From Perkinsus chesapeaki ATCC PRA-425 (taxonomy: Eukaryota > Protista > Perkinsozoa): a stretch of 64,000 nucleotides of DNA. The notes beneath the pieces were generated by a model, which had not been told where the DNA came from, did not search any database, and saw only the letters and a program-made list of their open reading frames with translations. Positions 3,518 to 8,088 of this stretch are shown piece by piece. The stretch is from contig JAAPAO010000011.1 of the NCBI GenBank assembly GCA_013115145.1, positions 1 to 64,000 on the forward strand. The letters run 5' to 3'. Within the stretch, counting starts at the first letter, position 1; the number at the start of each line of letters is the position of its first letter. A program made the position numbers and the translations under genes.

Positions 3518-5904
3518 TCATCCTCTCTCAACTGTTTGATGCTTACCTCCTTTACCTCCGTTATTGTAGTAACCGCCACCTTTCCCTTTACCCCAGTCGC
3601 TGCCTTTGCCCGAGGGGCTATTCCACGCTGGGCCATTCCACTCAGAGTTCCACGAGCCACCTGAATTGAACAGGTCGTCATCTCGCGACGTCCTCTGTTA
3701 CCACCCTGCCAGTTGCTTTGCGGCTGCGAGTACTGGGGTCCCCATGCCCAATTATCTGCACCCTTGCCTGAAAGATTAAAGTACTACCAGTAAACCGAGA
3801 CAGCGTTACCTCCTTTTCCGGCGCTCCACCAGCCGCTACCATCCCCACTGTAATCTTGCCAACCTTTAGAGCCTATGAATACAAGTCTTCAAACCGTAAC
3901 AGCATATCGAAGCCTACCGCCAGGGTGGCCGCTCCACTGTCCCTTTCCAGAGGATCGTCCCTTACCACTGTGATGTGGCCAGCCTCCCTTAGAGGGTGCC
4001 GGGGGAGGCAGATCAACTGGGAAGGTAGGCCCCTCCACCGCAGCAGGCTCATCGACTGGTTCCTAAATCATGGGCAGCTTATATATGCTGAAGCTCTTAT
4101 ATACCCCTACCGCTGCAGGCTCCTCAACTTCCTTGATCGGTTGCGGCTCCTCCACCATCACTGGGAACTTCGAAGCATCCAGAGTGACTATGAAAACCGG
4201 ATGCTCGACAACGACGCGGTAATACAGGTTCTCCTTGATGGACTTGGAGGCATCCAAAAGCCAAAACCTGTCAGCCTGAAAGTTCCCTAGGCAGCACCCC
4301 ACCCTTTACTTATTGCAACGGCTCAAGTCCTGCTCCGTGTTGTTATATGGGCTCTCGTCGTGGTATGTATGGGGCTTGTGTGACATCAACACCTGAAGCT
4401 TAATAAGCAGCCATCTTCGAGCTCCTGAGCACCTTCATGAACACCGACACCTTCTCCGTCCCAGCAGCGATGTAGTCTGGTATACTGTCGGCAAGGTCGC
4501 CTAATCACTGAGCATGCGATCTGCTGCCCCCCACTTCCGCCACTCTCACGTCTCCATCTATTGCCGACCAAAGCCTCTATCAAGTCACCCGATTTAGCAT
4601 CCTCACTGCATCTGCAATACAGACCGATCATCAGGAAGCCCGGAAAGTCAATGCGTTACACTTCGTTCAGGACTACTTCTTCGCCGCCTTCCTTAGCTGG
4701 TTGGAACCGCCACTCAAGCTTCCAGTGCACCACTGGCTCTTGACGAGGCTCCTGGGGCGCCAATGTGGATTCCCCCTTAGTCGCCTCCGGATCAGCTTTG
4801 CCTGCATCGGCGTTGGGCTCCTCTGTCTTCTCCTAACCCCATCAGTCAGAAGGCGATCCCCCGCCATACACTCCCTACCGGCTGTTGTTGCTGCTGCTGT
4901 TCTCCCTTTTTAGACTTAGGCTTTCCTCCGGGGTACTTCAGGCATGAGCTATTACGCTTTGCCAGCTGGAACAGATCTGGCACTAAGTGCAGGGTCGTCA
5001 AAGGTGAACGCTTAGACAGGAAGTCTCGCAGTCTGAGGGAACGGGAGTAGGTGATGTCACTCCTGACGCTGAAGATTTCGAAATGGAGTTCATCACGGTG
5101 CTCGGGCACCACCGGTGGAGTTGCCTCCGTAGGTGCCAGCCGAAATTAATGTTCCTATTCCTGAGATCGTCCTGCTTGTCCGACCACTACCGCCAAATTG
5201 AGGTCCTCATCGGCGAAATTGATTTCTCAAAGGTGAAACTATCCTTCGCGCATTTTCATTCGGGAAGCGCAGCAGCGCATGAAATGAGCTCGACGTACCG
5301 AGTTTCTCGCGAGACGTGAATCGTTCCGGAAAAAACCTGCAGTACACTACCCCCCTCTATACGGCAATTGGCCCACTTACGTATATCGCGCAGAGTGCCG
5401 CTGCTTCGACCTAGTATTTCGATTAACCTGATAACCACTTGCCTCCCACCTCCCCCTTTCCGAACTACACTGTCATTCCGTGTCTCCAGAGAGTGAGTCT
5501 GTGCCGTGTGAGCCTTACAGGAGGCATCTTCAAGCAGGGATATATCTGCTCAGATCTTCTCCTAGTCCCCCTATCACCAGCTCACCGCGCCTCAGCACCT
5601 TCTCGTCGAACTCGTTTATCGCAACGTGCTCCACCAAAGCCCGCTTGCCTACCCAACAGTCCAGCCAAAACAGTGACCGGCCCATCACCTGTGCACTTGC
5701 TGTTGGCCTTATGAGCATTAACACACGCGAGGCTGCACGTCTTCACACTGCAGGCTGGGCAAGTATATCTGAACTCCACGGCTGATCAAATCGCCCCACA
5801 AAACGCATTGCCGCGCCGAGCTACTACTTGAATTCGCTCTTCTTGCATACTTGGCATAATGACGAGGACGCACTGGCCTCGTCTGTCGTCGAAGACCCAC
5901 TCAT
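3518..5904 (-). CDS. BCD1: Box C/D snoRNA protein 1 (zf-HIT, BCD1/ZNHIT6-like), multi-exon, with a Gly/Trp/Lys-rich C-terminal tail
   Basis: The spliced N-terminus reads LCQVCKKSEFK|YTCPACSVKTCSLACVNAHKANSKCTG|KRALVEHVAINEFDEKVLRR, i.e. a HIT zinc finger plus the BCD1-type downstream helix. The C-terminal half includes FWLLDASKSIKENLYYRVVVEHPVFIV. The 3' end is tentative and there is an apparent frameshift near 3683. Confidence 0.8.
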
Positions 5905-6010
5905 TCCAACGGTACTACTACCCGCTATGATAAGACTTAACGCAAATCGTTGAGCAGACAGTTGCACCACAGGAACGATGCGAGGGTTCGGTGAGATAGT
6001 TGGCAAGGGA

Positions 6011-6067
6011 GAGTAGCATATCATATACAGTTCGTGAGGATTTGGAGCTGAATAGTCATTCGCACTC
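6011..6067 (-). promoter_or_regulatory. SECIS element (type I) in the 3' UTR of the SelT gene
   Basis: The minus-strand RNA reads GAGUGC-GA-AUGAC-UAUUCAGCUC-C-AAA-UCCUCAC-GAACUGUAUA-UGAU-AU-GCUACUC. It has the AUGA/UGA kink-turn quartet, a 10-position helix II (8 Watson-Crick pairs), an apical AAA and a helix I. Confidence 0.85.
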
Positions 6068-6585
6068 GCGACGCTGGACAGGATGGGATGCAGGGAAGTA
6101 GCTCGGGACCTGCGAGCAATGGGGACAGTGTTTGTGTGCCACAATATGATAAAAATGTAGAATTTTCCCAGTTTTCGTCAGGCACTTGATCCCAACTATA
6201 TTCGACGAGTTGAAGGAGGCTACGTTGAAGATTGTTTTCATCGTAGTACATACTTCCCTATTGTGACGTTAATATTATACTGTTGCATTATAAACTATTG
6301 AAAGAGTAGCATATGTATGCTATTAGTACTGTACAAGCTATTACCTACTACCGCAATACGTAGCGCCAGTACAGCTTAAGCTTTGTTAAACAACACAGTA
6401 CCATTCCCACTGAACAGTTCGATAGGAAGCATTACCGCACGCCAATGAAATCCCTAACCCCATCAACTCCGGTATATTTCTTTATTACCCGTTCTCCTCT
6501 CTCCAGTCAGCGTCTACCCTTGGCAAAAATCACACCTAAGCCTTACACCTAAGCCTTTTATCGTCAAGTATACAGGAGGGCGCCT

Positions 6586-7900
6586 TTAGAACGCGAAGTC
6601 AACTCCTTGCCGTTGGAAGGCCTAAGCTGATGATACTGCTAACATCTACGTGCTTAACTGACCATAACGATATCGTTTAGCTTCGGCAGACGGCCTGCTT
6701 GCAGTGTAGACCAGATAAGAGTATTCCCCTTGTAGATCTCGAACGCCCCTACAGGAGATATGCACCTCGGCACTGGTTGCCCCAGTACTACCAGTGTTCA
6801 TTAGGATACCCTGTAGAGTAGAGCCTATGAAATAGACCGCAAAGAACGAAGTGAATTTATTGTCTTGCATGCTCTTCACCAAGTCAGGCGTGGGGATACC
6901 GATAAAGCCGCAAATGGATTCTGATAGTGACGTCCTGGTAGCGTCGCCATCGGAAGACGTTACCTCCAAAAAACACCATCGCAAACAGGAATAGCTGCAG
7001 CATCCCTATAAGAGATGATATATGTTTCACGGACTCCGAAATGGGGTACCTTGGGAAAGAACATCTTTTTAGGGGAACGAAATAAACCTCGGGACTACAG
7101 CATAGCCACTTCGAGCTCGAGAGCGCAGGGTTCTTTGAAAGAGCCTCTTCCTATCTAGTGAATTCCGAAGATTCCTAGCTCATGGGTAAAGTAGGTTCGA
7201 ACTATTGCTATTGTTATGATGAAAGATGCCCAATGGTAGTGGAGTTCAGATACGCTGATCTTTCTAGGCTCTCGAGAATATAAAATATCTATGCGTTTAT
7301 AACAGAAAAGCGGTTTTATTGAGAACATATATATCCACAGTGGACCATCCACCGCAAAGGCTCACACAGGGATCCTTATCTCAGTTATTACTCGACGCCT
7401 CGTATGTCCAGTATCGAAGTAGACTTCTGGTCCAATAATTGAGCTACTTGTTGGAATGCTCCACGGAAAGATCAGCTCTGGCAGAACCTGTCCGCGAATG
7501 AGCCCCACTCGAACGGCGGTTGCCTACTGTATCGTAACCTGGTCCTCGGGCATGGCAACATCAAGATACTCCCTATGCGGAATATCTTCCCCTTGCAGAG
7601 CTGACTTGAAGTATTCTGGCTTCATAGGATTCGCCTGAGTAGACCTCATTCGTCACCGGACCGATTGGCCTCCTATAAATGGCCCGTTTACTGTACCCTT
7701 ACAATTTAATACCATATTATATATACTTTACCCATATTGAACTATATTGCATTGTACTCTAATCACATATCAAATATAGTCATATTCACTTCTTGCTAAA
7801 ATGTCCTAAGGACACTGTCCTTTATGCCTTATTACCATCGCTAGTCCACAGAAGAGAGCCACAAGTAAGCAAAGCAGGTATAACCTTCGATTAAAGCTTC
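6586..7900 (-). CDS. SELENOT: Selenoprotein T (Rdx family) with in-frame UGA = Sec at 7472-7474; multi-exon; start codon unresolved
   Basis: The spliced product includes RRLYLLCLLVALFCGLAM|ANPMKPEY...DQVTIQ|FCQSUSFRGAFQQVAQLL...GVE|YPISESVKHISSLIGMLQLFLFAMVFFG|...DNKFTSFFAVYFIGSTLQGILMNTG|AFEIYKGNTLIWSTLQAGRLPKLNDIVM|AFQRQGVDFAF*. This matches the SelT CxxU motif, TM hairpin and TGAFEI...WS...GRLP motif. Confidence 0.92.
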
Positions 7901-8088
7901 TCAGAATGGTAAAAACAAATACTAACAGATCCGCGAATACAACGATACCTATATCTAAATCTATATCTATATCTAAATAGTTCAATTCAGTTCGAGGTCA
8001 GGTCTACAAATCTTGCACTCACTTGCATTTCCCTTACCGAATCGGGTCTTCGCGGATTTTGAGAACATCAACCTTTTTTATCGTTATT

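Follow-up and report, generated by a model that had tools for sequence, protein, structure and literature searches.

The window (the whole stretch of 64,000 nt of Perkinsus chesapeaki DNA that was analysed) carries on its minus strand a selenoprotein T (SelT) gene with an in-frame TGA codon, a candidate SECIS element (6011..6067) downstream of its stop codon, and beyond that a gene for a BCD1/zf-HIT protein. The exons of SelT are defined by the cDNA contigs of four small public runs (454 libraries), which were placed on positions 5300-7800. These contigs give the minus-strand GT..AG introns 7527-7488, 7391-7050, 6963-6921 and 6791-6749, and a fifth intron, 6662-6622, is given by an 11-letter loose end of the cDNA; the joining of 6663 to 6621 is found in the X5 contig and agrees with the C-termini of two other proteins, P0002 of Perkinsus olseni and the transcriptome open reading frame P0004. 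The TGA lies at 7472..7474, in an exon, 7487-7392, that is present in the cDNA contigs, and the spliced frame around it reads ...TIQ-FCQS-U-SFRGAF..., which places the UGA in a CxxU motif (CQSU) at the known selenocysteine (Sec) position of SelT. From the TGA to the stop codon (TAA, 6586..6588) there are 414 nt, a whole number of codons, and the protein ends in ...LNDIVM-AFQRQGVDFAF, the same C-terminus as that of P0002 and P0004. P0002 bears the UniRef name selenoprotein T, and both it and P0003 match Pfam Rdx. Only a single copy of the SelT 3' region was found when the genome was searched for a second one.

The public P. chesapeaki gene model P0001 (window 6586-7900) has 100% identity over the query exon. 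It misses the Sec exon through a wrong splice, reads into the intron 6662-6622 and ends in ...VMVS, so that the true C-terminus AFQRQGVDFAF is lost. At the other end of the gene, a loose end at 7635 that is shared by three contigs matches 7837-7866, and therefore a further upstream SelT exon is expected across an intron of approximately 201 nt (window 7636-7836 for the intron and 7837-7940 for the exon); this exon ends in ATG and codes for a hydrophobic stretch in frame. The MMETSP open reading frames P0004 and P0005, from two Perkinsus species, open with an antisense translation of SelT exons 2-1 (window 7552-7638, plus strand) and then run into the sense C-terminus; this inverted chimera is found in both of them.

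The 3' UTR of the SelT mRNA

The 3' UTR of SelT consists of two parts, of 97 nt (6489..6585) and 152 nt (5958..6109), separated by a GT..AG intron of 379 nt (6110..6488) that follows the stop codon, precedes the candidate SECIS and places an exon junction 97 nt past the stop codon. The joint is carried by two cDNA contigs, X1 record 1 and X2 record 3, which come from two runs on the same sample; each extends from 6624 to 6489 and continues at 6109. In the minus-strand reading, X1 record 1 reaches 5958 and then goes on with AC, a run of twelve A and letters that do not match the genome; since the genomic sequence near 5958 is not rich in A, the run represents a poly(A) tail rather than internal priming. 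The mature 3' UTR is thus 97 + 152 = 249 nt long, and the hairpin lies entirely within its last exon, ending 51 nt before the poly(A) site. In the gene, the AUGA of the hairpin starts 527 nt past the stop codon; in the spliced mRNA it starts at nucleotide 148, and the distance from the UGA of the CQSU codons to the AUGA is approximately 565 nt.

The RNA that bears the hairpin is a minus-strand transcript, spliced and polyadenylated, and the final 36 coding nt of SelT are part of it. Because no single cDNA contig joins the exon of the UGA to the hairpin, the link between them rests on the last coding exon that they share. Upstream of 6624, the 100 letters that precede the shared sequence in X1 record 1 and X2 record 3 differ from the expected SelT exon; the first 30 and the first 18 of them had no match in the window or the genome assembly, and they may stem from chimeric cDNA, from DNA that was not assembled or from an alternative 5' part.

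The ATG of the BCD1/zf-HIT gene (5902..5904, minus strand) follows the SelT poly(A) site at a distance of 53 nt. The second exon of this gene matches zf-HIT, and the gene call for its P. olseni counterpart carries both zf-HIT and BCD1. A preliminary description of the window, made from the DNA letters, had set the hairpin approximately 520 nt downstream of the SelT stop codon and had extended the 3' UTR to within approximately 110 nt of the BCD1 start codon. The first distance holds in the genome (519 nt from the TAA) but not in the mRNA, in which removal of the intron leaves the AUGA at 148 nt; the second describes the end of the hairpin, 107 nt from the ATG, but the 3' UTR itself continues to approximately 5958, leaving 53 nt. 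Its placement of the hairpin in the SelT mRNA agrees with the cDNA, in which the hairpin is found on a spliced, polyadenylated RNA together with the last SelT coding exon, the UGA exon being on separate contigs; polyadenylation occurs near 5958, downstream of the hairpin, and not upstream of 6070.

Structure and sequence patterns of the hairpin

Read on the minus strand from 6067 to 6011, the hairpin is GAGUGCG-AA-UGA-C-UAUUCAGCUC-C-AAA-UCCUCAC-GAACUGUAUA-UGAU-A-UGC-U-ACUC, and it can be divided into helix I, a K-turn core, helix II and an open apical loop with the AAA motif. The 5' arm of helix I, GAGUGCG (6067-6061), is followed by an unpaired AA and then UGA (6060-6056), with C6055 next. 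The 5' AUGA of the non-Watson-Crick quartet accordingly occupies 6059-6056, with CGA before it, as also in the remaining P. chesapeaki SECIS candidates. The strands of helix II, UAUUCAGCUC (6054-6045) and GAACUGUAUA (6033-6024), pair at eight of ten positions, the mismatches being U.U and C.A; together with the apical loop of 11 nt they span 6024..6054. The AAA (6043-6041) is unpaired, begins 12 nt past AUGAC, and has a C before it and the rest of the loop, UCCUCAC, after it. The 3' UGAU of the quartet (6023-6020) is the partner in the G.A / A.G tandem, and the 3' arm of helix I (6018-6011) pairs with 6067-6061 over 7 bp with one bulged U, a helix that was regained by folding when the core alone was held open. 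The sequence and coordinates given in the preliminary description agree exactly with these, and its helix II of eight paired positions out of ten and its flanking helix I were both found again.

In form 2 SECIS elements there is an extra mini-stem and the AAR motif lies in an internal bulge, whereas in form 1 the AAR lies in an open apical loop. The constrained fold leaves the apical loop of the SelT hairpin as an open CAAAUCCUCAC of 11 nt, and hence form 1 is predicted. The hairpin takes the SECIS shape when it is folded with the core held unpaired, at -9.1 kcal/mol, the lowest stability in the set of SECIS candidates. Without constraint its minimum free energy is -11.1 kcal/mol (z = +0.48), no more stable than random sequence according to an energy model that gives no credit to the G.A tandem.

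Three sets of pattern rules were applied. A SECISearch-like descriptor (ATGA, one nucleotide of any kind, helix II with at least 8 of 10 positions paired, AA 10-13 nt on, and a 3' GA) has one match on both strands of the 64-kb window, which is the SelT site; dinucleotide shuffles gave 1.7 +/- 1.3 matches per 128 kb, from which approximately 0.003 would be expected in the 249-nt UTR, for a descriptor that was partly shaped on the SelT candidate. When the rules were relaxed to at least 6 of 10 pairs, RUGA, and AA or CC, and the joined mature 3' UTR was included, the SelT hairpin was still the sole candidate both in the mature UTR and between the stop codon and the BCD1 ATG. A descriptor derived from the other SECIS candidates of P. 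chesapeaki, CGAATGA...AA...TGAY, has the SelT site as its only match in the window, and it matched shuffled sequence 0.02 times per 128 kb, with a match in 6 of 300 shuffles. A metagenome scan for the core pattern found nothing.

The Rfam SECIS models (RF00031 SECIS_1 and its sister models) did not match the SelT element at the gathering score or at E-values up to 10 in scans that covered the window, 2.2-kb and 151-nt stretches, six related loci and the whole genome, and they likewise had zero matches in the whole genome, at the loci of the five other candidates and at the P. olseni orthologue. The Infernal-type check proposed in the preliminary description thus yields no match to the hairpin with the Rfam models, and its term "canonical" fits the pattern of primary and secondary structure but not these models. 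The Rfam result is treated here as a blind spot of the models and not as evidence against the SelT element.

A covariance model built from four of the other P. chesapeaki candidates, with SelT left out, ranks 6066-6011 first among the full-length structural matches in the window, at 10.7 bits. The E-value of this match is 2.5 over the 161 kb searched, which is not significant, and approximately 0.01 when scaled to the 628-nt stretch from stop codon to poly(A) site; two partial matches without the helices (the GGACGAAUGAA string) rank above the SelT site in the same search. The P. olseni SelT orthologue scores 14.3 bits with this model. An earlier covariance model (R1), built from two glutathione peroxidase (GPx) elements, found the Sep15 and SelK elements and missed those of SelT and SPS2, and was dropped as overfitted; MAFFT alignments of five and of three elements shifted SelK out of register, and no model was built from them.

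The P. olseni orthologue and other SECIS candidates

In P. olseni, represented by two alleles or strains in four assemblies, SelT and BCD1 are again neighbours and the same hairpin is kept between them (L012:5485-5527 and L014:1809-1851), with the sequence GAGUGCGA-AUGAU-UAUUGAGCUU-(A/G)AAA-UCGUUGCAGAU-GAGCCCGAUA-UGAU. Identity between P. chesapeaki and P. olseni is 70-78% over 6077-5993, compared to approximately 35-45% elsewhere in the UTR and its intron. Within this block, AUGA, AAA and UGAU are unchanged while the apical loop varies in both length and sequence, and the two species have in common GAGUGCGA-AUGA, UGAU-(A/G)UGC, the AAA and the register of helix II. In a three-row alignment, 88% of the pair cells are standard in register, compared to 27-51% when the partner strand is slid, and 90% of the helix I cells are paired over the two Perkinsus species. 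Helix II differs at four positions, one of which is a compensatory change: position 5 is C-G in P. chesapeaki and G-C in P. olseni. At position 10 there is a single-sided change from C-G to U-G. This covariation comes from two species only and does not exceed the shuffle control (171/500). The P. olseni element differs from that of P. chesapeaki, for which form 1 is predicted, in having a predicted 3-bp mini-stem after the AAA, as in form 2, a longer helix I and a folding energy of -21 to -23 kcal/mol, compared to -9 kcal/mol in P. chesapeaki.

The 3' UTR intron also appears to be shared. Because the sequence on the acceptor side, CAG/GUyCyGAGCUACUUCC (the slash marks the splice boundary), is conserved in P. 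olseni and the donor context, ACGG/GUA, is similar, P. olseni SelT probably has a 3' UTR intron of 108 nt at the same place (L012:5322-5429). Word searches for a P. marinus orthologue returned no P. marinus genome protein, and a more distant SelT transcript (L023) has no SECIS pattern in the 124 nt after its stop codon.

Family searches of the P. chesapeaki genome yielded a pair of GPx genes, one SelK-like and one Sep15/SelM gene, and a selD/SPS2 gene that has a TGA in frame; a SECIS candidate lies downstream of each on the appropriate strand: L016:2785-2825 (plus strand) and L017:539-494 (minus) for GPx, L019:510-470 (minus) for the SelK-like gene, L020:1204-1158 (minus) for SPS2 and L018:1900-1944 (plus) for Sep15/SelM. 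An Rdx family search of the genome recovered no further small selenoprotein genes. The five candidates and the SelT element have in common CGA-AUGA-N, AAA 10-12 nt on and UGAY, and all six fold into helix I, core and helix II with only the core held open. The five others have an apical mini-stem of 3-5 bp (predicted form 2) and helices richer in GC, whereas SelT alone has the open loop; the folding energies are -21 to -30 kcal/mol for these five and for the P. olseni orthologue, compared to -9.1 kcal/mol for SelT.

Components of the Sec machinery are encoded in the same genome. Three tRNA-SeC(TCA) genes lie on different contigs (L001:1500-1586, L002:1500-1586 and L003:1501-1587), and SepSecS is present. 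A fourth tRNA-Sec locus (L004) scores 54.8 bits against the Rfam tRNA-Sec model and has no ARAGORN call. A selB family search of the genome for eEFSec returned only generic translational GTPase matches.

Function of the hairpin and comparison with known systems

The minus-strand hairpin at 6067-6011 is, with a probability of roughly 90%, the SECIS of the P. chesapeaki SelT mRNA. The preliminary description had read it as a SECIS that supports Sec recoding of SelT, and this reading draws support from the position of the hairpin in the 3' UTR and on the coding strand, from its conservation in P. olseni, from the layout that it shares with other candidates of the genome and from the presence of Sec machinery. 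According to established knowledge of eukaryotic SECIS function, from which the mechanism is inferred, the tandem G.A pairs of AUGA and UGAU would form a kink-turn to be recognised by a SECIS-binding protein of the SBP2 type; this protein would recruit the Sec-specific elongation factor with Sec-tRNA(Sec), and the ribosome would then read the UGA at 7474-7472 as selenocysteine instead of stopping.

It is very unlikely that the hairpin is a chance look-alike without a role in recoding, in which case the true SECIS would be elsewhere or the UGA would not be read as Sec. The weak folding (z = +0.48), the lack of an Rfam match, the covariance-model E-value of 2.5 over the whole search and the shaping of one descriptor partly on the candidate are all compatible with chance, but chance offers little reason to expect a sole UTR candidate that stays the sole one under relaxed rules, when the number expected by chance is approximately 0.003 in the UTR or, with the independently derived descriptor, 0.02 per 128 kb; nor does it fit the island of conservation in P. 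olseni, in which the pairing is kept, or the fact that the CxxU UGA occupies the known Sec position of SelT and that the genome encodes tRNA-Sec. The conserved block might alternatively serve the neighbouring gene, as a promoter, leader or trans-splicing signal of BCD1, or might direct SelT polyadenylation, with the SECIS shape as an incidental property. The letters that are conserved are the ones that define a SECIS (AUGA, AAA, UGAU and both arms of the helices, in which one change is compensatory), the loop being variable, and the same layout is found behind five unrelated selenoprotein-family genes, which together make a BCD1 or 3'-end signal a most improbable account, even though the BCD1 ATG is only 107 nt away from the block and the poly(A) site only 51 nt, short intergenic spacers need such signals and the covariation is thin.

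A kink-turn core with tandem G.A pairs is also common to C/D-box RNAs, so that a snoRNA-like or other kink-turn RNA that happens to sit in the UTR would present a similar core. The sequence has no C box (RUGAUGA) or D box (CUGA) arrangement, Rfam has no snoRNA match at the hairpin, and the element belongs to a polyadenylated mRNA; an origin of this kind is extremely improbable. The SelT hairpin, read as a SECIS, is very probably functional and is a component to be expected in this well-known system. The SelT SECIS is a missed annotation of a well-known class and not new biology.

The intron between the stop codon and the SECIS allows one further, speculative proposal. Splicing moves the AUGA from 527 to 148 nt past the stop codon and leaves an exon junction 97 nt past it, and therefore intron retention or junction-dependent mRNA surveillance could conceivably tune SelT output, for example with selenium supply, although this is unlikely.

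The hairpin completes the case that SelT of P. chesapeaki, a parasite of oysters and clams, encodes a true selenoprotein. For the annotation of Perkinsus and related alveolates, it matters that the Rfam SECIS models miss every candidate examined here, that a genus-level descriptor (CGA-AUGA, AAA 10-12 nt on, UGAY) detects Perkinsus SECIS candidates, and that SECIS searches should permit introns within 3' UTRs. Among the papers searched there was none on Perkinsus SECIS elements; a SelT SECIS has been reported in the syndinean Amoebophrya, which is related to Perkinsus (PMC6394959).

Compared to the eukaryotic SECIS of form 1 (type I, as represented by the SECISearch descriptor and Rfam RF00031), the SelT element is unlike in its Rfam score, which is below the reportable level, in the two mismatches of helix II, in its low predicted stability, and in the spliceosomal intron that the gene carries between stop codon and SECIS. 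It shares with form 1 its site in the 3' UTR of an mRNA whose coding frame includes a UGA, the AUGA/GA quartet, a helix II of approximately ten positions, an unpaired AAA 11-12 nt past the core, an open apical loop, and a helix I below the internal loop.
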